64,000 nt of DNA, taken from sequence record LC819009.1; one strand, given 5' to 3'. Shown here piece by piece: positions 376-18,259 of the stretch; the first letter of the stretch is position 1; each line of letters opens with the position of its first letter. Under the pieces are notes generated by a model. It was not told where the DNA came from and searched no databases. It was given only the letters and a program-made list of their open reading frames with translations. The translations under genes were made by a program, and so were the position numbers.

Positions 376-484
376 GTTGTATTACCTCTTATTCCTAGGA
401 AAAAGGTTTTCTGGGAAAACGAAAACTACGATTCTGTACAAAACCGGTTTTGGCAGTGATTACCACCAAACTATTGAGACTGTT

Positions 485-1126: not shown

Positions 1127-1225
1127 GCTCTTCGCCTTTATCCGGTATGAAAATAAAATAAAAAACTTGCCCGTTCTTATTTGAACGCTGCAACAGAAAT
1201 CCTACCAATCCAGCAGGTCTAGACA

Positions 1226-2749
1226 ATGACCCCAAGACTTCTTCTTCTCAAGATCATCACGCTCCTGCACCTCGAATCACAGATCGAAGGTGAGAATGCA
1301 CGATCGTCTGACTTGGCTACCAGCCTGCTCGCCACCGTCAAAATTCCTGAGGCCGACGTGGGCCTCATAGACAGTGAACGAGAGATCATTGGCTCGCTCT
1401 ACAACATATGTCGCAAACTCGCCAACGCCACGCCGGGCGAGGAGATGGACAAATCAGACCTCCTTCAGGAGGTCCGGTTGCATTGTGGCAGTGAAATCGA
1501 TCTGTTCGAATCCTTCAAAGAAGGGATCGTGATTGAACTATCACAAGATGGTCTCAAAAAGCGTGTTGGCTTCATCCGTAAAGAGCTCAAATCGTATCTG
1601 CATTACGAGGGTACGAAAAAGCGCATCATGGATGCTGCTCATGCGCTGCGTTTCAAAGAGAACTCGATTGAAGATATGGACAAGTATCTTCGCGACTTCT
1701 CAACTGACATTGAATCATCGCTCAGTAAATCCAGCAAGCAGGACGAAGCTATTCTCGGCACAATCGACATGGCAGATAAAGCGTCAGTTGTGAAAGCTGC
1801 ATGTTCCGTGTCAGATGAGCAATCGGGTGCCGGTAAGCTCAAGACGCATTTGCAAGATCTGAATGACATGATGAACGGCGGCATGCGCCGTGGTGAATTC
1901 GTCTGTACTTCGGCTCTTCCGCATAACAACAAGACCGGCTTTTCGTTGGACATCTTCGCCGGTGTCGCCATCAACAACGATCCGTATCTGATTGACCCGA
2001 AGAAGAAGCCTCTGCTTCTGCGCATCTCGTTCGAAGATGACGTCGAAATGAACTTCAACCACCTCTACAAGCACTTCTGGGAACAGGAGCATGGCGAGGT
2101 GGCAGTGATGGTCGGTAAATCCGAAGAGGAAATCGCCCAGTACGTCATGGACAAGATGACGGCACGTGGCTGGCATGTTCGCATGTACAAGGTCGATCCT
2201 TCGATGTGGTCGATCTTCGATCTGTTTGCATTCGTGCGTGATCTGGAATCGCAGGGTTATGAAATTGCTCTGTGTATGCTGGACTACATGCGTAAGATGC
2301 CGACTACGGGTTGCGTACAGGGCATTGCAGGCGCTGACGTCAGAGACATGGCTCGTCGTTGCCGTAACTTCTTCAATGCCCGTAAAACGGCGTTTTACAC
2401 GCCGCACCAGATCTCGACTCAGGCTAAGGAAATCCAACGTTCGGTGCCTAAGGACTTTGTCAAGATGCTGCCGGGTGGCGGTTACTACGACGGCTGTAAA
2501 TCGCTGGATGCAGAAATCGATCTGGAAATCTTCCAGCATATCGAGAAGCACAATGGTCATTCGTATCTGACCTTGCAGCGAGGCAAGCATCGTAATGCTC
2601 CGGTGCTGGCAGAAGAACTGAAGTATCTGGTTTACCAATTCTACGACATCGGCGGCATTCCTCCTGACATTGGCGGAGAGCGTTCCGGTTTGCGTAAGGT
2701 TGGTGGCAAGCGTGCTTCAGAAGCTGAAACCGATTTCGATTGGCTGTAA
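1226..2749 (+). CDS. dnaB: DnaB-like replicative helicase (phiKZ gp118-like)
   Basis: GGMRRGEFVCTSALPHNNKTG (Walker A variant), ISFED, LCMLDYM (Walker B), HQIS, QRGKHRN motifs. Confidence 0.9.
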   Translation: MTPRLLLLKIITLLHLESQIEGENARSSDLATSLLATVKIPEADVGLIDSEREIIGSLYNICRKLANATPGEEMDKSDLLQEVRLHCGSEIDLFESFKEGIVIELSQDGLKKRVGFIRKELKSYLHYEGTKKRIMDAAHALRFKENSIEDMDKYLRDFSTDIESSLSKSSKQDEAILGTIDMADKASVVKAACSVSDEQSGAGKLKTHLQDLNDMMNGGMRRGEFVCTSALPHNNKTGFSLDIFAGVAINNDPYLIDPKKKPLLLRISFEDDVEMNFNHLYKHFWEQEHGEVAVMVGKSEEEIAQYVMDKMTARGWHVRMYKVDPSMWSIFDLFAFVRDLESQGYEIALCMLDYMRKMPTTGCVQGIAGADVRDMARRCRNFFNARKTAFYTPHQISTQAKEIQRSVPKDFVKMLPGGGYYDGCKSLDAEIDLEIFQHIEKHNGHSYLTLQRGKHRNAPVLAEELKYLVYQFYDIGGIPPDIGGERSGLRKVGGKRASEAETDFDWL

Positions 2750-2765
2750 AAGCAAAAAAAAATAA

Positions 2766-2808
2766 GAGTCCCTACTCCCGCAAGGGAGTAGGGGGCTCTG
2801 ACTTTATG
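2766..2808. terminator. Bidirectional hairpin terminator between convergent genes
   Basis: Long stem with GCAA loop; A-run on the left, TATG on the right. Confidence 0.8.
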
Positions 2809-3316
2809 TTGACTCTCTCTTGTCAACATAAAAATAACCCTTAAACTTTTCACTACTACTGTTAATTCGAAACTTAATTGTAGCTCTATTTATTCCAGTA
2901 GCTTCACTGGCTTTAGCAAACGACGGATAGACGACACCATCGATTGAAACCGGTTTGCTATTTTTTTCGATGGATTTTTCATGAGCTTTTAGCAGTCCCT
3001 GTTTCTGCTCTTCTGTTTGAACTCTTGAAGAATGCACGGTTTTCATTCTCGCCTTGGTTTCTTCAGAATGGCGGAAATTGCGACGAAATTCAGCCATTTT
3101 TTCTCTAGTCGCATCTGAAACTTTTCGACCAATCAAACTCGCCATCAGTTTACTTTTCTGATTAGAGTTAATTTTCCGTCCAAGGCCAGCGCGACCAATA
3201 TTAATCTTTCGCGTATCTTCTACAATTTTTGCATCTAAAGATTTCTGCCAGGATTGGGTAATTTGATCAATTGTCTCATTGATTTCATCTATCGATAGCG
3301 GCTTTCCGTGATTCAT
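2804..3316 (-). CDS. NUMOD3-repeat plus NUMOD1-like HTH DNA-binding protein (homing endonuclease-derived, no nuclease domain seen)
   Basis: Repeats GRKVSDATREKM and FRHSEETKARM; C-terminal KPVSIDGVVYPSFAKASEATGINRATIKFRI; GAGGA RBS before ATG 3316; AT-rich. Confidence 0.75.
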   Translation of the reverse strand: MNHGKPLSIDEINETIDQITQSWQKSLDAKIVEDTRKINIGRAGLGRKINSNQKSKLMASLIGRKVSDATREKMAEFRRNFRHSEETKARMKTVHSSRVQTEEQKQGLLKAHEKSIEKNSKPVSIDGVVYPSFAKASEATGINRATIKFRINSSSEKFKGYFYVDKREST

Positions 3317-3382
3317 TTTGTCCTCGCAAATCAAAGACAGATCTAACAAACCCTCTCCGAAGAAAGAGTTTGTAAAACTGTC

Positions 3383-4234
3383 TTAGTTCAAATGGGTTTC
3401 CCAGTAATCGGGATAGTCGCTGGGATGATTGATCATTTCAGCAGCAAGCTCCTTGATCGCACGCATACTGACCGAACCCAATCGATCCCAGTTATGATCC
3501 AGCCAATGCAACAGTTCCTGCTTTTGCGCCTTCGTCAGATCGAAGATCTTGTTCTTCATTGTCACTGATGCAGTCCAGCCCCAGCTGACATCGCGATCGT
3601 ACTTGAATTCCGTGTAAACAACGCGATCGCGTATTGCTGATTCGTCGATCTTGCGGGCACCCTTAGGAGCCGGATTGGACGGAGCAAGAGACTGGTTGCT
3701 GGTGATAATGAAGTTAATGTTGTCGGTCGGAATCTGGATACCAACACCGTCCGCTGTTTGGAAAGCGCGCAGTGCTTCTGCAACGCGTTGCTCGTGGACC
3801 GATTCGCTCTTTTCATAAAGCTGAATCATCGCCGTCATGTTCTTGTTCCATGCGAACATATTGCGATCTTCATCTAGAGCACCCTTCATGACCGACAGAC
3901 TGGTACGATCAGCAAAAACCGAATCACAGTCATCGATCCAAACGTAGGTTTTCTTCCCACGAGAATTATGAACAGCCAAAGCTAGAGCGATAGCGATGGC
4001 ATTCATGCTGGCCACGCCGATGATTTCGATCAGAGGAATACGATGTTTCTTTGCCGTGTTCCGAACAGTCACGGACTTACCGATACCTGCGGGACCGACG
4101 ATGTAGTGGTGTCGTTTCGGAACGATAAGGGCATCCGACTTGTCGAAAGCCGCTGTGACTTTACCAACGAGTTGATTGGTCAGGATTTCGCCGCGCTCGA
4201 TGTTTTGTTTTTGTTTGAGGGTAAACGGTTGCAT
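3383..4234 (-). CDS. AAA-family P-loop ATPase
   Basis: Walker A GPAGIGKS, Walker B VWIDDCD, sensor-like IITSN, AIRDR arginine-finger-like motif. Confidence 0.85.
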   Translation of the reverse strand: MQPFTLKQKQNIERGEILTNQLVGKVTAAFDKSDALIVPKRHHYIVGPAGIGKSVTVRNTAKKHRIPLIEIIGVASMNAIAIALALAVHNSRGKKTYVWIDDCDSVFADRTSLSVMKGALDEDRNMFAWNKNMTAMIQLYEKSESVHEQRVAEALRAFQTADGVGIQIPTDNINFIITSNQSLAPSNPAPKGARKIDESAIRDRVVYTEFKYDRDVSWGWTASVTMKNKIFDLTKAQKQELLHWLDHNWDRLGSVSMRAIKELAAEMINHPSDYPDYWETHLN

Positions 4235-4262
4235 CTTCTACTCCATTTTAAAAAGATTAAAC

Positions 4263-4292
4263 ACAGACAGATGCCCGAAGGCATCTGTCTGT
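4263..4292 (-). repeat. Intergenic hairpin sharing a 26-nt core with 8715-8744
   Basis: AGACAGATGCCCGAAGGCATCTGTCT present at both sites; cUUCGg loop on the minus strand. Confidence 0.85.
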
Positions 4293-4302
4293 GATCAAGA
4301 GG

Positions 4303-4488
4303 TTATGCGCCTTTAACTTGCTTCTCTTGAATCAAGCGAACCATCCGCTTGTAGACTTCGACGAAGGTAAAACGATATCCTGCTTTAGCCAGAGCGTTTT
4401 CAACGTCTTCGGCCGGAGTTAGAATACCGTTCTTGTCCATCGTGTCGAGAATGATCTTCTCGATCTTATCTTCTTCACTCAGAAGCAT
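4303..4488 (-). CDS. Small winged-helix-like protein
   Basis: 61 aa, GAGGTG RBS, KIILDTMDKNG...VYKRMVRLIQEKQV. Confidence 0.55.
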   Translation of the reverse strand: MLLSEEDKIEKIILDTMDKNGILTPAEDVENALAKAGYRFTFVEVYKRMVRLIQEKQVKGA

Positions 4489-4894
4489 CTTTCACCTCAG
4501 CAGAAGCCGATACAACCGGTTCAGGCGGCGTCAGATACTCGCTGATCAGTTCCATCATCGAATCCGTCAGCACGTAGCCCTTCTTGGTCGGATGGGCCAC
4601 GCCGTCGACATGCAGATCCACCAGCAAGTTGCTGATATTCATCTGCGGCATGAAGACGTTTGCTTCACGCATCTTCTTGAGCAGCAGGTTTTCGTTGATG
4701 GGTTTGTTTTCGCCGAGATACAACGTACGGACGATGAAACCCGAAGCCGTGATGTTCGCATGGCCGCCGTAACCTTCGATGGTCTTGGTTTCGACGGATT
4801 CCTTGCTACGAAAGCACGCCGCCGCCATCGACTGGATCCGTCGGAAGCCCTTGCCGTTTCGATCGATTTTTAGCATTTTTAATTGATACCTCAA
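4475..4894 (-). CDS. Winged-helix-like protein (start may be ATG 4876)
   Basis: ISNLLVDLHVDGVAHPTKKGYVLT recognition-helix and wing pattern. Confidence 0.6.
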   Translation of the reverse strand: MRYQLKMLKIDRNGKGFRRIQSMAAACFRSKESVETKTIEGYGGHANITASGFIVRTLYLGENKPINENLLLKKMREANVFMPQMNISNLLVDLHVDGVAHPTKKGYVLTDSMMELISEYLTPPEPVVSASAEVKDASE

Positions 4895-5204
4895 AAATAA
4901 GTTCTCTCATGTCCTGCGTCAGCTTGAACATGTTTCCCGGAAGGGAGTGTACTGCGCCACGGTCTTTCAGAAACCGAAACGCCTTTTTGACATTATAGTC
5001 GGTGGCGCTGGTAATCTTTGCATGCCTCAGGTCAACTGCTACCTGAATGAAGTTATAGGGCTGGTCAGGAAAAACCAGTAAGCGTTTTAAAACCAGGACG
5101 TTTAGTCCGCCCTGAAAGCCTGATACCATTGTTGCTTGTTGGGCTAACTCACGCATCTGCGCGTCTGCTTTATTGAGCTTAGGTTGTTCTTTCAGGGCCG
5201 ACAT
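4806..5204 (-). CDS. Winged-helix-like protein
   Basis: VKKAFRFLKDRGAVHSLPGNMFKLT pattern. Confidence 0.6.
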   Translation of the reverse strand: MSALKEQPKLNKADAQMRELAQQATMVSGFQGGLNVLVLKRLLVFPDQPYNFIQVAVDLRHAKITSATDYNVKKAFRFLKDRGAVHSLPGNMFKLTQDMRELIFEVSIKNAKNRSKRQGLPTDPVDGGGVLS

Positions 5205-5213
5205 CAGTCGCTC

Positions 5214-5543
5214 CTAGTGTTTAGTCATCGCCTGAGAAAGAATCAGGTCGAAGATCGACGTCATCTCCGGATGGAGGCGATATGCCACGTTCGGAAACGA
5301 AGTCTTGGTTGCGAGGATTCCCTTCTGCAACAGATCCGTACATGCGTCACGCAGCATGTCGGTGATGTGGATGCTGTCGCATCCATAGATAGCGAATGCC
5401 ATGTCTTGAAGCGACTTGGACTCACCATCCTTATCCTTCAGGTAGAACACTACCTTGTGCTGGGTATCCCAGTTGTCTTGCGGCTTTGCTGCAATGATGA
5501 CGGCTTCTGCCATCTGGCGACGCCACATTTGTTGTGCTGACAT
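5214..5543 (-). CDS. Winged-helix-like protein
   Basis: LRDACTDLLQKGILATKTSFPNVAYRLH pattern. Confidence 0.6.
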   Translation of the reverse strand: MSAQQMWRRQMAEAVIIAAKPQDNWDTQHKVVFYLKDKDGESKSLQDMAFAIYGCDSIHITDMLRDACTDLLQKGILATKTSFPNVAYRLHPEMTSIFDLILSQAMTKH

Positions 5544-5552
5544 TTTGTCCTC

Positions 5553-6101
5553 TTATTCAAAAGCCTTCTGTTGTTTGAGGATGGCGTAAAGATCGATAGC
5601 TTCCTGTTTAGTAAGCTTCGACCTGCCTACATGGATGTGTTCGAGGTTTTGTTGTGTCTCGAACAACCACAAAACATTCTTGTAAAACTGATACAGGTCG
5701 CCGATCTTGACGTTGTTGCCTTTGACCTTGATATTGACATCGAGTAGGAATTGCTTACCCTTCTCACCCGTGTAGCTCGACATCAAGCTCACGAAATCAA
5801 GCGTCAGCGAATACAGCGTTGGACGATCGCCGATAATCGTACCCATCGGTTGCCAGCCTTTCAGAACCCCAGCATCGAGCAGGTCCTGCAAAGCAGTCTC
5901 GACTTCGGTCGTCGAGTACTTACCAAATGCCGTAAGACGATGGATGATTTCTTTACCATCATGTCCTTCCGGATGGCGGCTTTGTTCCGACAACAGCTGA
6001 ACGATGCATTCTTCAGCCGACAGATCGCTACCATACTTGATCGATGCACATGCAACAGCAACCAGCTTCTTGATGATTGCGTTGTTTTTATCGAGTTTCA
6101 T
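5553..6101 (-). CDS. Winged-helix-like protein
   Basis: VETALQDLLDAGVLKGW...PTLYSLT; GGAG RBS before ATG 6101. Confidence 0.6.
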   Translation of the reverse strand: MKLDKNNAIIKKLVAVACASIKYGSDLSAEECIVQLLSEQSRHPEGHDGKEIIHRLTAFGKYSTTEVETALQDLLDAGVLKGWQPMGTIIGDRPTLYSLTLDFVSLMSSYTGEKGKQFLLDVNIKVKGNNVKIGDLYQFYKNVLWLFETQQNLEHIHVGRSKLTKQEAIDLYAILKQQKAFE

Positions 6102-6150
6102 TTTAGCTCCGTGAAAGGAATTGTAAAGTTTACTACAGGGATTCACGGCA

Positions 6151-6167
6151 GTTATATATGTCTGAAA
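6151..6167 (-). promoter_or_regulatory. Putative early phage promoter
   Basis: TTTCAGACATATATAAC, matches the motif found at 7 intergenic sites. Confidence 0.7.
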
Positions 6168-6173
6168 TAAAAT

Positions 6174-6210
6174 GCATACTCATACACACTGGCGCAAGCC
6201 AGTGTGTATG
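6174..6210 (-). terminator. Hairpin terminator with TATG tail
   Basis: CATACACACTGGC-GCAA-GCCAGTGTGTATG perfect stem. Confidence 0.75.
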
Positions 6211-6218
6211 ATGAGCGC

Positions 6219-6539
6219 TTATGCTGCGATTTTAAAATTGCAAATACGGTCGATCTCCAGCCTTGTCCGCAAACGCAGACGCGACTCCTTATGCAGGCGT
6301 ACGTGATTGATGGAGAAGATACGACGTTCAACCTTGTATCCCTCCGGAGTCACGAAACGACTCTTCAGGTAACCCCGTTTTTCAAGAAGCTCCATCGTCT
6401 CCATCAGACCGTCAGCAGACAACTTACCTTCTGCATCACGGACAATGTCGGACGAAGTCTTCTCGACCCCGTAAGGCGCTTTAAGAAGATCAAGAATCTG
6501 TTCTTCCAGCGCTGTTAGTTTTTGTTGGTCCAGTTCCAT
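6219..6539 (-). CDS. PadR/MarR-like winged-helix protein
   Basis: EEQILDLLK...LMETMELLEKRGYLKSRF...RRIFSIN. Confidence 0.65.
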   Translation of the reverse strand: MELDQQKLTALEEQILDLLKAPYGVEKTSSDIVRDAEGKLSADGLMETMELLEKRGYLKSRFVTPEGYKVERRIFSINHVRLHKESRLRLRTRLEIDRICNFKIAA

Positions 6540-6568
6540 TTTCTAAGGTCTCGTAGAAGTTCTTGTTA

Positions 6569-6745
6569 TTAGACCCGTGCGGTGTTGTTCATGGACTTCT
6601 GGTCACCGTGCCTGTTGCGGCTCGTAAGACCATTGGGATGAACATCCGATTTCTCGGTTTGTTTGATGTCCTGCCTGATTGCAGGGCTGAGTGGATTCTC
6701 GGCTTTAAAGCCGCCCCACTTTGTGGTGCCGTTTCCTGGTGACAT
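6569..6745 (-). CDS. Small hypothetical protein (58 aa, below ORF-track cutoff)
   Basis: Hand-translated MSPGNGTTKWGGFKAENPLSP...NNTARV*. Confidence 0.45.
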   Translation of the reverse strand: MSPGNGTTKWGGFKAENPLSPAIRQDIKQTEKSDVHPNGLTSRNRHGDQKSMNNTARV

Positions 6746-6838
6746 TTTTATTACCCGTCCTTACTGGTGAAAAACCACAGGATCAGCGAAAAAAATAATA
6801 GTCCGCCCCGTTAAGAGCGGACCCTCCATTAGCGTAGA

Positions 6839-7006
6839 TTAACTACGCTTCTTAGCTGCCCGGCTTTTGCTGATGTGGGCTTCGATGCGCCTATCTTCTT
6901 CCATGAGTTTTCGGGCTTGTTCCTGAGTCATGTGATGCCGTTTCGCAATATCTTCATTGTGAGCGGCAGCTTGGAACAACTTTCTCTGACTAGGTGAGTA
7001 CGGCAT
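6839..7006 (-). CDS. Small basic phage protein (55 aa, below ORF-track cutoff)
   Basis: GAGGAGG RBS; MPYSPSQRKLFQAAAHNEDIAKRHHMTQEQARKLMEED...KKRS*. Confidence 0.75.
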   Translation of the reverse strand: MPYSPSQRKLFQAAAHNEDIAKRHHMTQEQARKLMEEDRRIEAHISKSRAAKKRS

Positions 7007-7093
7007 TTTCAAACCTCCTCAACGGAAAAAATGCGACCGAACCCCGAAGGATCCAGTCGCCCAACTTACCGGGCTGAGGCTCCCGGTAATCCT

Positions 7094-8683
7094 TTACTGC
7101 TGTTCGCCATCCGGACCCGGATAGTCGATCGACGACTTCACCACCCAATCCGAAAGAGGCGGTTTACCTTCCAGGCTGCGAATGAAGTTCTTCACTCGTA
7201 CTTCGAACGGCATTACACGTCCGTCGTACGTTTCGTACAGATGGTCGACCAATGCTGCGATGAACGCGTTCAGCTTCGTTTCACGATCCGGATCAGTCAG
7301 ATCGATCTTCAGCATGTTCGGGTTGATGTAGTGTTCGACTGCTGCACGAATGAAGTACTTCGGGTCTTCCGGATTAGCGAAACGGTTGAACTTCTGATCC
7401 GTCTCTTCAAACAAAGGACCAGGTTCGACACCTGGGAAAGTTCCCCAGACGTGAGCAATCAACGTACGCTTGATCGTTTCGAATTGCGACATGCGTTCTT
7501 CTTCTGTGCCTTCCAGATAGAAGAGACTCGGCGACAGGTAGTTCTCGACAGCTTGTCGGACCAACAGAAGCTGCTTGTAGTCCGGATACTGCTGAAGCTT
7601 CACGCCTTCATGACCTGCCGATTGACGCATTTCGCTCAACGCCAGCTTTTTGGCAGAAGAACGCGATGCGACCATCGTGTCGTAGACGGTTTTGAACTTC
7701 GTATCGTAAGCAACCATCTGGTCCTTGTAGACAACGTTCGGAACCAGATTCTTTTCGACGATGCGAACGGTAGCACCGATACATTGTTGCTGGAACAAAG
7801 ATTCCCACGGTTCGGGCTTCACAGCCGTCTCGTATTGTTCATCGTTCCAGGTAACCGGGATACCCAGCACCCGAAGCTTATCGGCGATGATACCACACAG
7901 TGCCGACTTACCCACGCCGGTACGACCCATCACCACGACACGAATGTCCCCACCATTCAGGTAGTCGAGTGGAAGACCCTGACGACCCAGAACAGCCAAT
8001 GTCCATGCCACGGCACCATCCCACATGACGCGAGCATTCTTCGTGTCATAATGACCGTACTGATTAGGATAGTGCGGATGGTCCGGATCGTAACGCTGGA
8101 CATCCTTGATGAAGTTCTGCTGACGCGCGAACGATTCGAACGCCTTGGTATCGTCGACGATGACGTCCGGCCGCTGTTCGATCAAACCGGTCTGCCAGCC
8201 ATATGGCTCGATCTTGACTTCATGATAGCGGGCCAGTTGACGAACGTAAGCGACCGCATCGGACTCGTGCCAGAAATCGACGGAGTGTTTTACCATTCCG
8301 TTTTCGTAGCGCGAATAGACGCCGTAGCCTTTCGTTTCATCATTAGCGCCGTCCATCTGAATTTCGATGGAACCCTGCTCCAGTTCCTTAAACGGAGCAA
8401 GCTGAAGACCGATGATCTTACCCGCCTTTTTATCGACGGTATGTTGGCCGATGTAGACAGGTATTTTGTATTCGTAGGCGAGGTTGGTCGCCGTTGCTGC
8501 AGCCTGACCGATGTCGGTGAAGTAATTCGGATCGACTGGACTCAGGCTGCTGTCTTCGTGTTCCCAGAACAGAATCCAGCCAGCGAACCCGCGTTCGCCC
8601 TTCGCTTCAAATGCACCGACTACTTCACCATCGAGGTTTTTCACTGCGGGAATAACGCGAACCGACTTTGCTTTGTTTTGCAT
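7094..8683 (-). CDS. Mosaic hypothetical protein with a short P-loop module
   Basis: VVVMGRTGVGKSALCGIIADKL; AAGGTG RBS before ATG 8683. Confidence 0.75.
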   Translation of the reverse strand: MQNKAKSVRVIPAVKNLDGEVVGAFEAKGERGFAGWILFWEHEDSSLSPVDPNYFTDIGQAAATATNLAYEYKIPVYIGQHTVDKKAGKIIGLQLAPFKELEQGSIEIQMDGANDETKGYGVYSRYENGMVKHSVDFWHESDAVAYVRQLARYHEVKIEPYGWQTGLIEQRPDVIVDDTKAFESFARQQNFIKDVQRYDPDHPHYPNQYGHYDTKNARVMWDGAVAWTLAVLGRQGLPLDYLNGGDIRVVVMGRTGVGKSALCGIIADKLRVLGIPVTWNDEQYETAVKPEPWESLFQQQCIGATVRIVEKNLVPNVVYKDQMVAYDTKFKTVYDTMVASRSSAKKLALSEMRQSAGHEGVKLQQYPDYKQLLLVRQAVENYLSPSLFYLEGTEEERMSQFETIKRTLIAHVWGTFPGVEPGPLFEETDQKFNRFANPEDPKYFIRAAVEHYINPNMLKIDLTDPDRETKLNAFIAALVDHLYETYDGRVMPFEVRVKNFIRSLEGKPPLSDWVVKSSIDYPGPDGEQQ

Positions 8684-8703
8684 GTTGTACACCTTTTAAA
8701 AAG

Positions 8704-8744
8704 AGACATAGAGCATAGACAGATGCCCGAAGGCATCTGTCTAT
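8704..8744 (-). terminator. Hairpin (repeat of 4263-4292) followed by TATGCTCTATGTC
   Basis: 13-bp stem, UUCG loop on the minus strand. Confidence 0.7.
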
Positions 8745-8757
8745 TCACGCTTCGACG

Positions 8758-9972
8758 TTAGTCGTTGGTTTGCGGCTTGGCACGCTTTACTGCAGGCTTC
8801 TTGATCGGCGTTTTCTTCACCGGCACCGAAGCTTTCGACGGTTTCTTAGCCGCCGTGGTCGTAGCGGTTGCACCGCCTTCACCCAGGAGCGTTACCTTGA
8901 AGCCGAACTTCTCGGCAAACGCCGCGGCTTGCTTCTGGGTAAGCTTCGACGTCATCGTCGGGTTCTTCAGACCGACCCCAGCAGCCATGCGGATCACCAG
9001 AGCGTGCTCGATGATGCCCATGCTGCGAACCAGCTGGTCGAGCTTGATGGTCTTCGGGATCTCGATGGTCGGCTGTTTACGACGAGCGCCTGCCAGACGA
9101 TCGATTGCCTTCTGGAGCTCCGAGCCTTCCGGAAGCGGAGACTTTTTACCGAACATCATGCCTGACAGATCCAGCTTCGAGACCGGAGTCACACCTCCTG
9201 AGCTTGCTGCCGTAGATGCGACGGGTTCCGACATGATCGCCATACCGGCGCCAGAAGACGTCGAGAGATCCGTACCACCTTGGGTCTGTCCAGCTTCTGC
9301 GAAGCCCGCCTGAGCCGTTTTAAGGCCCTCTGCGAACGTTCCTTGCTGGCCTTCCGTCAAGATCTTCGTATCCTTGAAGATCACGACGACGACATTGCCG
9401 ATCGGACCGAGTTCCATGTACTGGATACGGTCGACCTGATCCGGGTTTTCGTTGGCAGTGCCTTCGTAAACGCGGATGATTTCCTTTTGCTTCGTGTCGT
9501 AGCCGACCCACACAGTGCTGCTGGAAACCTTGTGCAGGCCGTCGGTCTGCGAAGCCTTCGGATCCGGATCACGTTCGGTAACGTCATGCTCGACAACGAG
9601 CCGGCGCTTCCAGTACGAGATCGGTACTTCGACCGGCGTGTTGCTGCCGTCTTCCGGTTCTTGCTGAACAGAACGGATCGTCGGCGGGAAAGCTTCGTTG
9701 ACCATCTTGCCATTGATGAGCTCGAACATCATGGCGTAATGCTGTTCCTGCGCCGAGCGAGCCTGACCGTGGAAGATCGGCGGTTCGTTCGTATTGAAGC
9801 CGATGGTGTATTGCAGATACGGCATCGACTGGTTTTCATCGTGGCCGACGGTCGTCGTGAGCTTCAGGTTCTGGCGAAGACACGCGAGCGACAGTTGCTG
9901 CTGCATCGACAGGATGGTTGCGATACGTGCCGCGGCTTCCGGATTGGAAATGTTTTTGTTCAGGCTTTTCAA
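8758..9972 (-). CDS. Hypothetical protein with a C-terminal IF2_N-like domain and Lys/Pro/Ala-rich tail
   Basis: IEIPKTIKLDQLVRSMG...VIRMAAGVG...TQKQAAAFAEKFGFKVTL resembles the translation initiation factor 2 N-terminal repeat. Confidence 0.6.
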   Translation of the reverse strand: MKSLNKNISNPEAAARIATILSMQQQLSLACLRQNLKLTTTVGHDENQSMPYLQYTIGFNTNEPPIFHGQARSAQEQHYAMMFELINGKMVNEAFPPTIRSVQQEPEDGSNTPVEVPISYWKRRLVVEHDVTERDPDPKASQTDGLHKVSSSTVWVGYDTKQKEIIRVYEGTANENPDQVDRIQYMELGPIGNVVVVIFKDTKILTEGQQGTFAEGLKTAQAGFAEAGQTQGGTDLSTSSGAGMAIMSEPVASTAASSGGVTPVSKLDLSGMMFGKKSPLPEGSELQKAIDRLAGARRKQPTIEIPKTIKLDQLVRSMGIIEHALVIRMAAGVGLKNPTMTSKLTQKQAAAFAEKFGFKVTLLGEGGATATTTAAKKPSKASVPVKKTPIKKPAVKRAKPQTND

Positions 9973-9982
9973 AGCGAGCTCC

Positions 9983-10318
9983 TCAGTTTTGATAGGACAG
10001 GTCCGTCAGGCGAACGTATTTTTCGATGAACTGTTCGTCGTTCAGGATCTGGGTGACATCATCGGAAACGACAATCCAATCGCCCTTCTTACACAGGACA
10101 ACCTGACCATCGATTTCGAATTCGAGTTCGTCGACCGGGCGTCCGATCAACGATGTGATTTTGCGGCGGGCGAGATGTTTGCAAAAGAGGAAGGGGATCT
10201 CATCCGCATAGCCACGGTAACGGAAGGCGTAAACCTTCTGGACCGTTTTGGGGACGAAAGCGTATTTCAGCATTTCGTCCTCTTCTTTCGTTGCCAAACG
10301 TCTTTCTTGAGACATCAT
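9983..10318 (-). CDS. Phage protein of the GD(W/Y)I motif type
   Basis: VLCKKGDWIVV...EQFIEKY. Confidence 0.7.
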   Translation of the reverse strand: MMSQERRLATKEEDEMLKYAFVPKTVQKVYAFRYRGYADEIPFLFCKHLARRKITSLIGRPVDELEFEIDGQVVLCKKGDWIVVSDDVTQILNDEQFIEKYVRLTDLSYQN

Positions 10319-10548
10319 TCTCCCTTCAGGGGCGGAACGGTTTGATATTTGGCCAGATCGTGCACATACGTGAGGATCTGGTCATTGAGACCGTGCAAGT
10401 AGTACATCAGAAAGACTGTACAGACGAGCACGACTAGACCAACGGCGCTGATGCGCTTGCGAAAATAAAGCTCGTTGCAAAACAGAACGAGACTGCTCAG
10501 CAACAAGAACCCGAGTGCGATGATGGCGAAGACTGCTTGCATTTTCAA
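10315..10548 (-). CDS. Small two-TM membrane protein
   Basis: Two hydrophobic segments. Confidence 0.65.
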   Translation of the reverse strand: MKMQAVFAIIALGFLLLSSLVLFCNELYFRKRISAVGLVVLVCTVFLMYYLHGLNDQILTYVHDLAKYQTVPPLKGE

Positions 10549-10613
10549 CTTCCTTTCTAATAATCAACATATCAGGCCGCTCAATTGCTTTTTATTGCAT
10601 TGGGTTCACGTAG

Positions 10614-10630
10614 GTAATATATCTCCGAAA
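10614..10630 (-). promoter_or_regulatory. Putative early phage promoter
   Basis: TTTCGGAGATATATTAC. Confidence 0.75.
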
Positions 10631-10676
10631 TAAAGTATAGCACATAAACACACAGGGAGCCGAAGCCCCCTGCATG

Positions 10677-11684
10677 TCAGAACAGATCTTCAGAGAACAA
10701 CGGCGTGACGCTAATCAGGTAACCTCGTTCATCCATATCACGCTCACGCCAGATGCCACCCATTTTGGGATCTTCCTGGTGAAAGAGTTTGGATGCGCAA
10801 CGAGTCAGCATCACGGACATCGTAGGCGTGTCGACGATCATCTTATTATCAACCGCCATGAGCATTGCCCGATACCGTGTAACGAAATTGCCGTGATTCG
10901 TAAGAAAACCCTGGACTTCGTTTCGCTGCTGCCCGGCGTATGCTTCCTGGTATTCCCGGGACTGCAGGATGTGGTGATGACGATGCGGACGATCAACGTA
11001 CCACACCACACCATCAACCCAATTCGCAGCCGCTACCGGATACTCGTTCTCACGATCGATCGTGGCTTCCACTGCCTGGATGATCGCAGTACCGAAGTCT
11101 TTGAGCAGGCGGAAGTTCGTCTGGCTGAAGATCGCATTACGCAGCCTGTACAACTGCGCGATGTCTTCTTCGTCCTCATCGTAATGGATGATGGTGAACT
11201 GCATCGACTGCTCGACGATATGCGAACACATCGTACCTTCGGTCTTCTGCCATTTGCGAGGTCCGGTGATGATTGCGATAACCGGTTTGTCCTGTTTCCA
11301 GAACACGCAGATGTAGAGAGTGTCGTAACCGTACAGTTCGCTGTTGGCGATGTCAGACCAGGGCGTGCCGTCCATCAACACGAAATCACGACCTTTCTTC
11401 TCCGGGTTCTGCCGCATGAACTGCTCGGCTACCAGAATCGCTCGCATGCAAAGCGTTTCGGTGGTCTGAGGATTCACGTCGTAAACCGGCTGAGTCAAAC
11501 CACCCAGTCGGTAAACGTACTTGCAGCCCTTCACGAAACGATAGAGCAGATCGTTAATCTTCGGACCCAGACCAATCGCGCCGCTAGGGTTCGCTCCCCA
11601 GTGACCGGAGAACTGCGCCGGATAGCGGAAGTTAGTCTTCTTGACCAGCCCGCTCAGGAGCTTTTCCGAGTTGTTTTGCGACAT
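10677..11684 (-). CDS. Hypothetical protein with C-terminal QGF..N.G.F..R.EA-type phage domain
   Basis: EVQGFLTNHGNFVTRYRAM; GGAG RBS. Confidence 0.7.
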   Translation of the reverse strand: MSQNNSEKLLSGLVKKTNFRYPAQFSGHWGANPSGAIGLGPKINDLLYRFVKGCKYVYRLGGLTQPVYDVNPQTTETLCMRAILVAEQFMRQNPEKKGRDFVLMDGTPWSDIANSELYGYDTLYICVFWKQDKPVIAIITGPRKWQKTEGTMCSHIVEQSMQFTIIHYDEDEEDIAQLYRLRNAIFSQTNFRLLKDFGTAIIQAVEATIDRENEYPVAAANWVDGVVWYVDRPHRHHHILQSREYQEAYAGQQRNEVQGFLTNHGNFVTRYRAMLMAVDNKMIVDTPTMSVMLTRCASKLFHQEDPKMGGIWRERDMDERGYLISVTPLFSEDLF

Positions 11685-12120
11685 GAGGAGTATGCTCCCT
11701 GTTGAGTGCTAGCGTCCAGGACGTGAAGTCCATGTCGACCAGAACTGTCTTGTTGTTTGCGTGATGTGCCGCCAACACCTTTTCGAATTCCTGGCGGTTT
11801 GCCGGATCATTCGGGTTGTACGGAATCAGGCCAAGGCGGATCACCATATCGTGAACAAAGTCCACGAATTCAGGTTCCGGCCAGCCTGTTCCACGAGCGA
11901 CGTCCATCAGAAGATCCTGACGCCACTTCCAGCCCATCAGGTAGGCCATGGCGTAGTAGTTCTCGACTTTGGGATGATCGTCGTCTTCTTCGACGACTGC
12001 TCCACCATTGAAGCGGACCGCTGCACCACAGAGGTTCGCAAACTCATGGAGGAAGCGTTGTTTGACTTCTTCCGACAACGGCGGATTGAAGGTATTGACT
12101 GTGGCTTCTTTGTAGAACAC
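11632..12120 (-). CDS. Hypothetical protein
   Basis: 162-aa ORF in operon orientation. Confidence 0.6.
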   Translation of the reverse strand: MFYKEATVNTFNPPLSEEVKQRFLHEFANLCGAAVRFNGGAVVEEDDDHPKVENYYAMAYLMGWKWRQDLLMDVARGTGWPEPEFVDFVHDMVIRLGLIPYNPNDPANRQEFEKVLAAHHANNKTVLVDMDFTSWTLALNREHTPHVAKQLGKAPERAGQED

Positions 12121-12190
12121 GGTTCGCCTCTCAAATGAAGCAAAAAAAATGGTGAGAGGGAAATCCTCTCACCACCAACGCGCTTCTCGC

Positions 12191-13630
12191 TTAAGCGCGC
12201 AGGAAAGCGTTCATCGCGTAGAACTTCAGCGACGGATCGAAGATCTGCGAGATCGTGCCGATCTTCCAGCGGTCTTCAGCCGGAATCTTGGCGATGAACT
12301 CGGGATCGCTCGGATGCGAGCCGCCATTGGACATGGAGTCCATGACGAAGCGACTGATGATGGCCGGACGATGCGGATTGAGCGACAGCATTTCCAGCGT
12401 ACCGATGAGCGAATCGATGACCGAACGCGACCAGCATTCCAGCGGAGTCGGCAGGAGCGAATCGTCTTGCAGGTCTTCGAGCCACTTGAAACCGACGTCG
12501 TGGAGTTCTTCTTCGTTCGTGAAGATCTCGTATTTTTCCGGCACCTGAATAGCGATCATCATTGCCAGGTGGTGCTTTTCGACATCACCCGACGCATAGT
12601 CGAGGAAGAACGTGGTGCGCTGATGCAGCCATTGTTCCGGCGAACACATTGCGTCCTGGGCGCCTTGAGCGATCAGATCGACAATGTCTTTCGTTTCGTA
12701 CACCACGCCGTCGTCGCTGTAGACACGCATCTCGATTTCTTCACGGCCTTCACGGATCACGTTGTTCATGATGCCGGTCCAGAAACCTTCGCACAACATG
12801 CGGCCCGTAAATTCATGGAACGCCATGTTCTGCGTATAGCCCGCTTCGCTATGCTTCGACGCATGTGTGAGCTTCGATTGCGTCGACAGGAAGTCGAGCG
12901 GGTTGATGTGACCGCCCACGCCGACCGAGCAGTTCATAGCCAGTCGTTCTTCGCCCACGCCCTTGCCACGCTGATACACGAAGATGCGATAGCGCTTGCC
13001 GATCTTCTTGTAGAACACGATGTACGGCAGCAGCTGGATGTAACGACTGTCATTTTCGCACCAGCCACGACGGATGAAGTTCAGGGCCCAGTAGACCGCT
13101 TCGTTCAGTTCGTTCGGACGCACTTCTTCTTGCGGGACCATCGTCATCATGTCGATGAAGTCGCGAGCGGCGATCGCCAGCACTTGTTCGACCGGCTTCT
13201 TCTGGCCTTCGACCGAATCGCACAGATCAGTGTAGGTCGGCAGACGACCGAAGTCGTGTTCCTTCATCAGGTCGTGTTCGACCGGCGGCTTTTCGTCGAC
13301 CATCAGCGGAATCTGACCCGGATAGAGAAGCGTGCCGAAAAGCGGAACCGGCGCGATGTCGTCCATGATCTGTTCGCCGAACTGGTTCTTGAACCCGAGC
13401 GACACTTGCCCGCCGATCGGCGTGATGACTGCGTTCTCGTCGTCGCGCATCTTCGCCGCACGCTTGATGATCTCGGTGCTGACCGGCAGCAGCGGAACGT
13501 ATGCACGCGCCGACAACGGGGGCGTTTGCAGATCGTCGATTTCGTCTTGCTGGTTTGCTGCGGGCGTGATCAGAACGCGAGTAGCCTGGTCAGCTGCTTC
13601 GGCTTGGTCGAATTTTTCTTGCAGAGACAT
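12191..13630 (-). CDS. NUDIX-fold phosphoesterase (COG4112/YmaB-like) with N-terminal extension
   Basis: YIQLLPYIVF, YQRGKGVGEERL, SVGVGGHINP, REGREEI, VEKHHLAM motifs. Confidence 0.75.
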   Translation of the reverse strand: MSLQEKFDQAEAADQATRVLITPAANQQDEIDDLQTPPLSARAYVPLLPVSTEIIKRAAKMRDDENAVITPIGGQVSLGFKNQFGEQIMDDIAPVPLFGTLLYPGQIPLMVDEKPPVEHDLMKEHDFGRLPTYTDLCDSVEGQKKPVEQVLAIAARDFIDMMTMVPQEEVRPNELNEAVYWALNFIRRGWCENDSRYIQLLPYIVFYKKIGKRYRIFVYQRGKGVGEERLAMNCSVGVGGHINPLDFLSTQSKLTHASKHSEAGYTQNMAFHEFTGRMLCEGFWTGIMNNVIREGREEIEMRVYSDDGVVYETKDIVDLIAQGAQDAMCSPEQWLHQRTTFFLDYASGDVEKHHLAMMIAIQVPEKYEIFTNEEELHDVGFKWLEDLQDDSLLPTPLECWSRSVIDSLIGTLEMLSLNPHRPAIISRFVMDSMSNGGSHPSDPEFIAKIPAEDRWKIGTISQIFDPSLKFYAMNAFLRA

Positions 13631-13742
13631 GGAAAATCCTTATCTAAAAAGTACTACCGGTTTAGGTCAAACCATCCGGTCTTGTAGTAAAAAATAAATT
13701 GAGCCGAGATAGCCGAAGCTATCCCGATCTCATTTTCAAAGG

Positions 13743-14324
13743 TTACGTCTTGGGAAAATTAACGCGTTCCCCACGCTGCTTCTGAGCCAGATACATCCGG
13801 AATGCGGTGATCTGTTGCGAGAATCTTTCTCGCGCTTGTTGCGTTTGCCCATAATTGACCGCAATAGCCGTACAAGCATTTACGAGCTTTGCGAAATCGT
13901 TATCGAACCGCTTGTCTGCAAATGAAGCACGAATGCGAGTGATGTTTTCTTCGTCGATCTGATTGTCAACGCCGTAACGCATTTGCATCGCTTTCCCTGA
14001 TGTCGAGGTAGCAATGTCATATCCGTCACGCCACTGGACCTGGCTGAGATTGTACAAATCTGAAGCACGAATCAAAATGACGAGATCGGGATCAAGTGGT
14101 CGCCGATTGATGACTTCTTTGGCATGATCTGACCAGACCATGTGCTTGTTGTCCATATAGGACCTCAGCAGCTCATTGTCAGCCCACGCTTCTTTGTAGA
14201 ACTTGTCCTGAGCAGCAACAGCTGTTCTGATGCGTTCTATCTCACGTTTGTGGTATTGTCGGACAATGATGAGCAGGATGATAAAAACGAGGCTGATTCC
14301 TCCGAACATCAGTCCATTTTGCAT
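13743..14324 (-). CDS. N-terminally membrane-anchored hypothetical protein
   Basis: FGGISLVFIILLIIV TM segment; GGAG RBS before ATG 14324. Confidence 0.65.
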   Translation of the reverse strand: MQNGLMFGGISLVFIILLIIVRQYHKREIERIRTAVAAQDKFYKEAWADNELLRSYMDNKHMVWSDHAKEVINRRPLDPDLVILIRASDLYNLSQVQWRDGYDIATSTSGKAMQMRYGVDNQIDEENITRIRASFADKRFDNDFAKLVNACTAIAVNYGQTQQARERFSQQITAFRMYLAQKQRGERVNFPKT

Positions 14325-14396
14325 ATTTGAATCTCCGTTATAAAAGGAAAACATAGTCCACAGGATGAGGCATTGCCTCATCCTGGGAGAAGTCGT

Positions 14397-14849
14397 TTAC
14401 TTCTTCTTGACGACCTTGACGGGAGCCTGCGCAATTGCGCCGATTACCACACCAGAGCGAATGTCATCATGACGCATCTTGATGAGGATGCGATTGCTAC
14501 CAGTGACAGGTGGCAGGATGATGACGTTCGTCCAGCCATCTACGTCGAGCACTTCACGGACGATGTTCGCAATGAAACGATCGTCCGAACCTTCCAGACG
14601 AGAGAACAGATCGATCTCGTGTTCCTTGCCGATGTACCAGGCGATTTCACCGATCGTGGGGTCGTACGAGTACAGACCCAGCTTCAGTGCTTTGGCCAGC
14701 AGGTCGAAGAATACATCCTTGACCTCTTGTTCCGACTTGAATCGACGGAACGACTTACCGCTGAATTCGGTAAGCTCTTTCTTGAGCATCTTTTTGACTG
14801 CGTCGAGGGAATTCATGTCAACCATTTTCCTGGCCACCCTTTTTGTCAT
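14397..14849 (-). CDS. Hypothetical protein
   Basis: 150-aa ORF, coding-like codon bias. Confidence 0.65.
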   Translation of the reverse strand: MTKRVARKMVDMNSLDAVKKMLKKELTEFSGKSFRRFKSEQEVKDVFFDLLAKALKLGLYSYDPTIGEIAWYIGKEHEIDLFSRLEGSDDRFIANIVREVLDVDGWTNVIILPPVTGSNRILIKMRHDDIRSGVVIGAIAQAPVKVVKKK

Positions 14850-15099
14850 CTGCGGGTTTCTGAACGCGAATGCGTTCAGTTTCGGGATGGATCGGCACGT
14901 AGTTCACGCCGAATTCGAGAAGCACGCGAGTTGCTTCATCGATGTATTTCTTTTTGCCTTCGTCTGAAAGCTGATCGAAGCTCTCTTCAGAAATCACATG
15001 CAACGTATAGTCACGACGCACGTTTTGTTCGGCCGCTTTCTGAATTGCTTCTTCCAGCGGATATTCCTTTTCTTCGATAGTCAGGATCTGACCCGGCAT
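14818..15099 (-). CDS. Hypothetical protein
   Basis: TTTTAAAA plus GAGGAG RBS. Confidence 0.7.
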   Translation of the reverse strand: MPGQILTIEEKEYPLEEAIQKAAEQNVRRDYTLHVISEESFDQLSDEGKKKYIDEATRVLLEFGVNYVPIHPETERIRVQKPADDKKGGQENG

Positions 15100-15190
15100 T
15101 AGCCTCTCCTCATTTTAAAAAGTTGGTGTTTCGGTACAAAATAAAAAGCCCCGCTATGAAAAATAACGGGGCCTAACATCACCTCCCTAA

Positions 15191-15565
15191 CTACTGGAAG
15201 GTCGGTTGTTGCTGTTGGAATCTACGATCGGGCGGAGTAGGCAGATCATGGATCGCCACTTGCCAGCGCCTGCTGAGTACATCCGGTAAGAACAGCGAGC
15301 GCTTTTCGCAATACGGATTGCCCCAATGATCCTTCTTGGGGACATCTTCCCAACCAAACTCGATTTTCGGAGCTTCAAACGTAGACGGCACATCTTCCTG
15401 CGTACCGTTAGTCTGATCGACCTTGCTTATGAAAGCAAAGGGATAACTACAGTGGATGCAGAATAAACCCTGCGCCTCACGTCCTTCGAAGTTTTCGTTG
15501 CTGGATCTTACCGTCCAGTAATGTCCGTTATCGCAGAGGTACTCTGTGTAACCTTCGTAAGACAT
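15191..15565 (-). CDS. Putative zinc-binding phage protein
   Basis: YLCDNGHYW...CIHC motif; GAGGAG RBS. Confidence 0.7.
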   Translation of the reverse strand: MSYEGYTEYLCDNGHYWTVRSSNENFEGREAQGLFCIHCSYPFAFISKVDQTNGTQEDVPSTFEAPKIEFGWEDVPKKDHWGNPYCEKRSLFLPDVLSRRWQVAIHDLPTPPDRRFQQQQPTFQ

Positions 15566-15608
15566 TATTAGCTCCTCTATCTGAGTAGTTGACTACCCAG
15601 ACTTTCGT

Positions 15609-15965
15609 TTAAATGAAGTTGTTACAAGGGTTGTACTCCAATTGCCCGGTGGTCCTACGATCCGGATAAACTTCGCTACTACTCGTACCACGAAACCCCG
15701 AGTACGATACCGATTTCAACTTGAAGACTTCTTCCCTGGTCAGGGGATTACCATGCTGGTCCATCTCAGCATGGATTTGGAATCGACGGAATGCTTCGTC
15801 GGCTGCTTTTTTCGTGTCCTCTGCTGCAATGAGTCCACGTGACTCTGCGGTCAGCTGATATAAAAAACCACCTGGCTGAGCCGACTCCCAATGTTGTTTC
15901 TCTTGGGCAAACCGCTGCCGGAACCGTTCGATTGATTCCTGGCGTTTCTGTTCCTTAGTCTTCAT
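15609..15965 (-). CDS. Hypothetical protein
   Basis: ATG directly after TTTTAAAA. Confidence 0.55.
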   Translation of the reverse strand: MKTKEQKRQESIERFRQRFAQEKQHWESAQPGGFLYQLTAESRGLIAAEDTKKAADEAFRRFQIHAEMDQHGNPLTREEVFKLKSVSYSGFRGTSSSEVYPDRRTTGQLEYNPCNNFI

Positions 15966-16025
15966 TTTAAAAGGTATTCCTTTCAAACGTTTCAGGATAT
16001 GACGGATTGTCCCCGTCATACCAGA

Positions 16026-16211
16026 TTACTTCAGGTGGTTCTTCTTCAGATGCTTTTTAATCCGAGCCTCTCTTGCAAGCAGGACCGGATCCACGTAGTG
16101 AGCACCAACGCTGCGCGTTACATCATGGCGCAAGTGCGAAGGTTTCGTCGTGCGCCGACAGTTCTTCATCACGTTTTGCATCTTCCCGTTCCTTGAGCGT
16201 TTGTGCTTCAA
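16026..16211 (-). CDS. Small basic hypothetical protein (start uncertain)
   Basis: Fills the operon gap. Confidence 0.45.
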   Translation of the reverse strand: MKHKRSRNGKMQNVMKNCRRTTKPSHLRHDVTRSVGAHYVDPVLLAREARIKKHLKKNHLK

Positions 16212-16617
16212 AGGAGCCTTCCGGATATTTACCCGGAATGCGGTCAGGATACAGCTTCTTCAACCGGCGGATGTATTGCAGCGCATGCCACTCGGTTACG
16301 AAGATCAGGTTTTGTGCCTCCGGCCATGCCGGCAAGGCGAGGAACTCAGCTTTCTGCTGCGGAGTATCCACGCCAAAGTCGGCGAAGTGATGAGACTCCA
16401 TTTCGTTGGTGTGTTTACGACCAACGACTTTCTTTCCTTCGAACCATTCGAAGAGTTCTGGGAACGGTCCGTCGGTCCTACGGTTGTCCTCGAACGCATA
16501 CGGAACGGTTACGAAGATTTTGATAATCTCCTCAGACATCGAGTAGCCGTTAACGAGATAAAGCTTCGCGCCTTTCTTGAAGTCTTCGAACTTAGCACGA
16601 CCGGCTTTAGTTGCCAT
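16123..16617 (-). CDS. Hypothetical protein
   Basis: GAGGG RBS before MATKAGR. Confidence 0.65.
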   Translation of the reverse strand: MATKAGRAKFEDFKKGAKLYLVNGYSMSEEIIKIFVTVPYAFEDNRRTDGPFPELFEWFEGKKVVGRKHTNEMESHHFADFGVDTPQQKAEFLALPAWPEAQNLIFVTEWHALQYIRRLKKLYPDRIPGKYPEGSFEAQTLKEREDAKRDEELSAHDETFALAP

Positions 16618-16855
16618 CTGTATTGCCCTCCGTCGCAGCATTCGTCTTTTCAACGTATGCGTTGTACTGCTCGATCAGCAGGTTGATCGGGTTGCGTTTG
16701 ATCGCGAGACCTTTGAGATCCAGATTCCGCGTAACTTGCAACTCACGAATGAGATATCCCGGTCCAGTCAAAGCATGCAGAAGCTCCCCCAGAGCCTCCA
16801 CATCTACGGATACCATCGCACGTTCTTCAACTTCTACTGATTGCTGTTCCGACAT
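16607..16855 (-). CDS. Hypothetical protein
   Basis: TTTTAAAA plus GGAG RBS. Confidence 0.7.
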   Translation of the reverse strand: MSEQQSVEVEERAMVSVDVEALGELLHALTGPGYLIRELQVTRNLDLKGLAIKRNPINLLIEQYNAYVEKTNAATEGNTDGN

Positions 16856-16877
16856 TTTCTTTCTCCGTTTTAAAAGG

Positions 16878-18239: not shown

Positions 18240-18259
18240 TCTTACCTCATTTTAAAAGT

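Follow-up and report, generated by a model that had tools for sequence, protein, structure and literature searches.

The window analyzed here is a stretch of 64,000 nucleotides of sequence record LC819009.1, the 225,607-bp genome of Ralstonia phage FLC4-5C; it begins at position 124,001 of the record and is 100% identical to it. On its minus strand, at window positions 8758..9972 (coordinates are those of the window unless stated otherwise), lies gene gp140 (BFM94519.1), an intact open reading frame (ORF) of 404 codons plus a stop, as judged by the ORF list, the translation and the match to LC819009.1, where the product is labeled “hypothetical protein”. The start codon is TTG and is located 6 nucleotides downstream of a GAGGAG Shine-Dalgarno box (9979..9984, minus strand), which was read directly from the sequence and shares nucleotides with the TGA stop codon of gp141, the gene upstream. 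Likewise read directly was a perfect hairpin of 11 bp, closed by a TTCG loop (8717..8742, minus strand); it begins 16 nucleotides past the gp140 stop and is followed by a T-rich run ca. 10 nucleotides further on; a consensus scan also flagged a shorter stem overlapping this hairpin. The hairpin and the T-rich run lie between gp140 and gp139, are terminator-like, and probably mark the end of a transcription unit.

The gene is one of a long series of small genes on the same strand that do not look structural; this series adjoins a gene for a DnaB-like helicase, and the major head protein gene is found ca. 8 kb away. When compared with the PHROGs collection, gp140 matched only its own unnamed family, PHROG 36087 (phrog_36087; E-value 3.1e-204 over residues 23-404). 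The relatives of FLC4-5C are phages RSL2, RSF1, FLC6, FLC8 and RsoM3USA and Burkholderia phage SURPRISE13. RSL2 and RSF1 make up the phiKZ-related Chiangmaivirus group (PMC8066314), and a nuclear-shell protein and PhuZ are encoded by the phage group to which FLC4-5C belongs (PMC11898562).

A preliminary description of this DNA had proposed that the product of gp140 carries a mimic of the N-domain of translation initiation factor 2 (IF2). The minus-strand reading of positions 8886-9066, the location given there for the mimic, corresponds exactly to the 60 residues quoted in its support, i.e., to residues 303-362 of gp140. The region was thus correctly located, with true bounds that are slightly wider: the IF2_N-like domain, of the IF2 N2 type, occupies residues 302-364 (8881..9069, minus strand). 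These bounds are derived from Foldseek, from a hidden Markov model (HMM) of N2, from hhalign profile alignments and from a predicted local distance difference test (pLDDT) score of ca. 96 in the structure model, in which the order of secondary structure elements is beta-beta-alpha-alpha-beta-alpha-beta. The net charge of the domain is +5.

The rest of the protein can be divided into four parts. The N-terminal body comprises residues 1-230 (9283..9972, minus strand) and was delimited by alignments A1 and A4, the AlphaFold2 model and composition. It is followed by a linker rich in Gly, Ser, Ala and Thr (residues 231-283; 9124..9282, minus strand), predicted to be disordered on the basis of its composition and of pLDDT values below 50 at residues 234-275. 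A segment at 9070..9123 (minus strand), defined by secondary structure and by alignment to IF2 N2, holds a short helix (residues 285-295) and then a basic patch, R-R-K-Q-P-T, situated just N-terminal of the IF2_N-like domain. The last 40 residues (365-404; 8761..8880, minus strand) form a tail that is expected to be disordered, judging from composition and pLDDT values below 50; it contains nine Lys, seven Ala, six Thr and five Pro residues, has a net charge of +8 and ends in a conserved K-P-Q-T-N-D sequence. The K/P/A-rich tail noted in the preliminary description is therefore real, as is the unrelated body of about 300 residues that was said to precede the domain, since body and linker fill residues 1-301 and the body, which is conserved, does not resemble IF2. 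Charge is distributed unevenly along the protein, the body being acidic (isoelectric point 5.4, net charge -6) and residues 284-404 having a net charge of +16.

Standard annotation tools do not reveal the domain. Pfam IF2_N (PF04760; gathering score 25.3 bits) matched neither gp140 nor four sub-pieces of it, even at E-values up to 10, and an NCBIfam scan of gp140 was equally silent. A BLASTP comparison of the C-terminal 122 residues of gp140 with E. coli IF2 produced no alignment to the IF2_N regions of the latter, a phmmer search of PDB sequences with the domain alone returned no match, and word-index searches, whether run with the C-terminal part of gp140 or with the tandem IF2_N stretch of P0019, a metagenomic relative, retrieved only the queries themselves or near-identical sequences. 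A different match, to a PASTA domain of penicillin-binding protein 1, appeared in a single-sequence phmmer search (E-value 0.013); it was rejected as a chance match because it was lost both with family profiles and with the domain alone.

For the N2 domain, an HMM of length 68 was built from 66 gammaproteobacterial segments, namely residues 305-372 of E. coli IF2 (sequence taken from NC_000913.3; Pfam places IF2_N at residues 314-364) and the equivalent parts of 65 other IF2 proteins. When 43 proteins were searched, this HMM matched residues 302-364 of gp140 with its positions 5-65 of 68 (11.1 bits, E-value 3e-4). Among 571 six-frame ORF pieces of the window, the only match was the gp140 ORF (E-value 0.004), and none of the 1,396 ORF pieces from the rest of the FLC4-5C genome was matched. 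By this HMM, the N2-like domain of gp140 is the sole such domain in the 225.6-kb genome. A corresponding HMM of N1, the distal repeat of IF2, found no match in gp140 or in the family set. In an hhalign comparison of profiles, the domain of the close gp140 family was aligned with the IF2 N2 profile over 64 columns at 25% identity (Prob 95.1%, P 3.4e-8); the same family profile gave a Prob of 0.4% with the N1 profile and of 0.1-0.2% with reversed profiles. The best PDB sequence match of a 43-sequence family profile was also an IF2, that of P. aeruginosa (E-value 0.018).

Intermediate sequences bridge the distance between gp140 and bacterial IF2. Scores of the N2 HMM rise stepwise from gp140 through its close relatives P0003 and P0004 (independent E-values (iE) of 7e-5 and 4e-5, respectively) to the positional orthologues P0019, P0020 and P0021. 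P0019 contains two tandem copies (iE 5e-14 and 2e-13), P0020 contains three, and P0021 and P0026 contain one each. Out of 28 more distant relatives scanned with Pfam, IF2_N was recognized in three, P0019, P0020 and P0021, with a best E-value of 3.4e-23. P0019 and P0020 were also matched by the NCBIfam IF-2 model, at model positions 2-66, corresponding to the segment that directly precedes the G domain. The search against Pfam IF2_N that the preliminary description had suggested as a check was thus negative for gp140 itself and positive for these orthologues, and it follows that, on Pfam alone, the likeness of the gp140 domain to IF2_N would have been dismissed. The domain, which is missed by Pfam, NCBIfam and PHROGs, was recovered only by structure prediction and by profiles bridged via metagenomic orthologues.

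Structure prediction leads to the same relatives. An AlphaFold2 model based on an alignment of 14 sequences was confident only for residues 10-88 and 300-366; with 43 sequences, the mean pLDDT rose to 80.7 and most of the body exceeded 90. A Foldseek search recovered 7UIU, which contains N2 of P. aeruginosa IF2, with both models, and for the higher-confidence model it was the top PDB match. Superposition on 7UIU and on 7UNV chain x, also P. aeruginosa IF2 N2, extended over 62-66 columns with an rmsd (root-mean-square deviation) of 2.0 Å, 27-28% identity and a Foldseek probability of 1.00. The E-values of this match, ca. 0.01-0.04, are modest, owing to the use of the complete 404-residue model as the query. 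Relative to IF2 N2, the phage domain contains two one-residue insertions. Together, the N2 HMM, the profile alignment with its clean controls and the first place of 7UIU in the PDB search uphold the IF2_N likeness of the 60 quoted residues, and the superposition proposed as a check (rmsd 2.0 Å over 66 columns at 27% identity) agrees with it. The term “mimic” is apt as far as it denotes likeness and less so if it denotes a mere look-alike: by sequence profiles and models, residues 302-364 of gp140 are best described as a divergent homologue of the IF2_N repeat, of N2 type.

A Pfam scan of the protein detected no GTPase and no other domain, and the model contains no GTPase fold, which bears out the preliminary description on this point; by Pfam, the G domain, domain II, C1 and C2 are all present in E. 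coli IF2 and all missing from gp140. Compared with IF2 N2 (PF04760; the repeat adjoining the G domain; residues 314-364 in E. coli; 7UIU), the phage domain has the same fold and detectable profile homology, and in IF2 and gp140 alike a basic stretch immediately precedes the globular part. In contrast to its counterpart in IF2, the phage domain is C-terminal on an unrelated body, has neither a G domain nor any further domain of IF2 behind it, scores below the Pfam threshold and has an additional lysine-rich tail on its C-terminal side. N1, the distal, NusA-binding repeat of IF2, is placed by Pfam in one repeat family with N2 and gives neither an HMM nor a profile signal with the phage domain.

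The body is the most conserved part of the gp140 family. Within the close family, pairs of sequences are on average 67% identical in the body, 40% in the linker and 45% in the N2-like domain. Foldseek found no convincing neighbour of the body in PDB or in the viral structure library BFVD except for the RSF1 orthologue, the only match returned from the latter; as modeled, the body appears to have a fold not seen before. Its first ca. 80 residues share the alpha-beta-beta-beta-alpha topology of T7 gp1.2 and dsRBD-like proteins (Foldseek probability 0.98-0.99). The fit is poor, with template modeling (TM) scores of 0.43-0.50, an rmsd of ca. 6 Å and 10-12% identity, and extends over just one third of the body, which is itself acidic. 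Given the low TM scores and the high rmsd, these matches, as well as one to the AcrIF24 fold, were not taken as meaningful.

A word-index search retrieved 14 relatives of gp140, all from the same phage group or from metagenomes, and a HMMER profile search of 1.84 billion representatives retrieved 33 proteins, each matched through the body and none of them an IF2. RSL2 and RSF1 were the only matches in IMG/VR. In phiKZ-type Pseudomonas phages, no member of the family was found, either by tblastn or by exhaustive profile search. Among the 45 family proteins examined, 18 have the N2-like domain, in one to three copies each. P0019 and P0020 are encoded on metagenomic contigs of 119 kb and 25 kb, respectively, where the upstream genes mirror the series gp146-gp141, with products of about 199, 481-486, 148-153, 336-337, 74-75 and 108-121 residues. 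Since the same series precedes gp140, these proteins can be considered its positional orthologues. In two more distant members, P0026 and P0028, the body is combined with central ALTTAQ repeats (Pfam PF20080) and a single C-terminal IF2N-like domain.

The C-terminal sequence K-P-Q-T/S-N-D, or its shorter form S-N-D, encoded at 8761-8778 (minus strand) in gp140, is present in 11 of the 45 proteins, P0001-P0004, P0006, P0007, P0010, P0011 and P0022 among them. It thus also occurs in P0010 and P0011, in which the N2-like domain is swapped for an insert. This C-terminus may be a short linear docking motif.

The way in which IF2 N2 contacts the ribosome suggests what its phage relative might do. 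In the 70S initiation complex of P. aeruginosa, the globular part of N2 abuts 16S rRNA helix h16 on the shoulder of the 30S subunit, the basic extension of N2 occupies the minor groove of h16, and the main contacts with h16 are made by Arg259 and by Ser277-Val278-Lys279 (PMC9192638). In an alignment with IF2 of Pseudomonas sp., the position of Val278 is occupied by Ile or Val in the phage domains, and the basic patch of the phage protein precedes the domain at the place of the N2 extension that bears Arg259. Residue numbers were transferred with a 3-residue offset between the Pseudomonas sp. and P. aeruginosa proteins, which we infer from their lengths of 837 and 840.

Our tentative proposal, which we hold with less than even confidence, is that the N2-like module serves as an RNA anchor, most likely one that docks at the 30S shoulder, holds the body there and maybe hinders anchoring of IF2 N2. 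Both the RNA-anchor role and the 30S docking role are suggested by homology. On this proposal, the basic module would bind RNA, most likely the 30S shoulder at or near the site used by IF2's own N2. In this way, the conserved body would be kept on small subunits or initiation complexes of the host, in the cytoplasm, where exported phage mRNAs need to be translated, and gp140 might also hinder N2 anchoring of host IF2. It is documented that phiKZ-type phages have ribosome-binding proteins (PMC10914614; PMC11849849). A bolder version of this proposal, which we regard as speculative and doubtful, is that the gp140 family represents a new class of phage translation-takeover factor, which would act as a decoy for the part of IF2 that anchors it on the ribosome. 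The N2-type domains would occupy h16, which could displace host IF2 or weaken its anchoring; by way of the body, they could also link 30S subunits with the phage nucleus or with phage mRNAs exported from it, and initiation would be biased toward phage messages.

Several observations weigh against 30S docking. The lysine corresponding to Lys279 is missing from gp140, P0004 and P0019, as far as can be judged with the residue mapping described above. The two or three tandem copies present in orthologues cannot all fill one h16 site. The basic tail is more widespread than the domain, being found in 29 of the 45 proteins, 11 of which are without the domain; in P0010 and P0011, the body, linker and basic tail are kept and a larger unrelated insert replaces the domain (A1 columns ca. 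318-470). Judging from the identities given above, the domain also evolves faster (45%) than the body (67%). The first three of these points, i.e., the lost contact lysine, the tandem copies and a tail commoner than the domain, make general nucleic-acid binding a serious rival, and we consider it possible, if somewhat unlikely, that the module anchors the protein to nucleic acids without ribosome specificity. Its ligands would then be RNA helices or DNA, such as phage mRNA or the DNA within the phage nucleus, and the one to three copies per protein would be used as tandem dsRBD or KH domains are. Tails rich in K, P and A are typical of proteins that bind nucleic acids unspecifically, and chimalliviruses already have one RNA-binding protein whose tail is disordered, ChmC (PMC11077065). 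However, the closest relatives of the domain in both structure and sequence are IF2 N2 alone, no HTH (helix-turn-helix), SAP or dsRBD domain was aligned to it, and h16 of 16S rRNA is the only documented target of N2.

If gp140 were a virion or internal head protein, its basic tail would bind packaged DNA, with the IF2_N-like domain remaining as a structural vestige. The resemblance of the tail to histone H1, the short distance to the major head protein gene and the repeat-rich middles of some members of the wider family are in line with such a role, which is nevertheless less likely and, in our opinion, improbable: the gp140 gene is outside the structural genes predicted by homology in FLC6 and SURPRISE13, it is located in a same-strand block of small non-structural-looking genes beside the helicase gene, and no fold match to any virion protein was observed. 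Also less likely, and a shade more improbable still, is that the domain is a protein-protein adaptor. N1 does use the IF2_N fold to bind NusA (PMC12297416), but the N1 HMM and the N1 profile are silent, every signal obtained is that of N2, and the module is strongly basic. Finally, the likeness to IF2 could be a matter of chance, the domain being some generic small alpha/beta domain. The failure of Pfam IF2_N, NCBIfam, phmmer against PDB and BLASTP against E. coli IF2 to detect anything in gp140, and Foldseek E-values of only ca. 0.01 (with the whole 404-residue model as the query), would be expected if this were so. Against this stand the profile-profile P of 3.4e-8 with clean reversed and N1 controls, the link to bacterial N2 through P0003, P0004 and P0019-P0021, and the superposition at 2.0 Å over 66 columns with 27% identity. 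On profiles and models, we consider a chance resemblance to be in effect excluded.

If the module does dock at the 30S shoulder, gp140 would bear comparison with phiKZ014, which clamps 5S rRNA on the 50S subunit (PMC10914614) and a homologue of which associates with the phage nucleus (PMC11849849). Both are proteins of phiKZ-related, nucleus-forming phages, with a seat on the ribosome that for gp140 is proposed from sequence and model comparisons. The plan of phiKZ014, with an N-terminal helix, a beta-rich part, a disordered stretch and a small helical domain at the C-terminus, is similar to that of gp140; no phiKZ014 chain was encountered in the sequence searches or among the Foldseek matches listed. 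The phiKZ segment 100001-150000 and window positions 1-20000 have a common gene order, in which the major head gene and a small gene are followed by a gene of helicase size in the opposite orientation and then by a long run of small genes. Across these syntenic 50 kb of phiKZ, nothing matched the gp140 body or the IF2N-like domain. The small-gene block of phiKZ includes PHIKZ105 and PHIKZ110, which were reported to co-sediment with the 50S subunit (PMC10914614).

ChmC, an RNA binder with a Whirly fold, is another protein of the same lineage to which gp140 can be compared. It, too, is non-structural, combines a folded body with a disordered C-terminal tail, and has been proposed to act between mRNA export and translation. 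Since the secondary structure of the gp140 body and the presence of a disordered tail resemble ChmC, the possibility that the body is a ChmC was considered. It was rejected: hhalign comparison of alignment A4 with ChmC of phage Goslar (gp176; sequence from NC_048170.1, the accession given in PMC11077065) gave a Prob of 0.6%, and the ChmC-like gene of FLC4-5C is located elsewhere, at gp230. The latter is a weak match (gene at 213941-214708 of LC819009.1, match at 214154-214735 of the record) and lies a few genes away from genes for subunits of the non-virion RNA polymerase, which is the conserved neighbourhood of ChmC in chimalliviruses.

In the full-text literature on IF2_N/PF04760 and phages, we found no description of such a phage protein; the sole non-IF2 architecture encountered there is a target of a bacterial diversity-generating retroelement. 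IF3, and not IF2, is mentioned in a large survey that compared jumbo phages (PMC7824862). The IF2_N domain itself is known; a phage version of it that lacks the GTPase, occurs one to three times per protein and is attached to a conserved body is new. Nucleus-forming jumbo phages separate transcription from translation, so that exported mRNAs have to find their way to the ribosomes of the host. Phage proteins known to bind ribosomes are few, the best studied being phiKZ014, which acts on the large subunit through 5S rRNA. Should docking of the gp140 module at the 30S shoulder prove correct, the phage would have borrowed the 30S anchor of IF2. The gp140 family would then offer a second, mechanistically different handle on the way in which phages take over initiation, and it would lend itself to probing the N-domain of IF2, which is poorly understood. 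Since the FLC phages, RSL2, RSF1 and SURPRISE13 are studied for biocontrol of the plant pathogens Ralstonia and Burkholderia, the functions of their genes are of practical value.

Two other genes of the same strand deserve mention. Immediately downstream of gp140, gene gp139 (7094-8683, minus strand) codes for a protein of ca. 530 residues with a Walker-A-like motif, G-R-T-G-V-G-K-S. It matched PHROG 31825 alone, in addition to weak ABC-ATPase-like matches in NCBIfam; on the P0019 and P0020 contigs, no gene of the size of gp139 follows the gp140 orthologue. The product of gp130 (3383-4234, minus strand; 283 residues), a gene of the same co-directional block, in which the other genes are unannotated, has a match to a Pfam AAA ATPase (E-value 2e-5).

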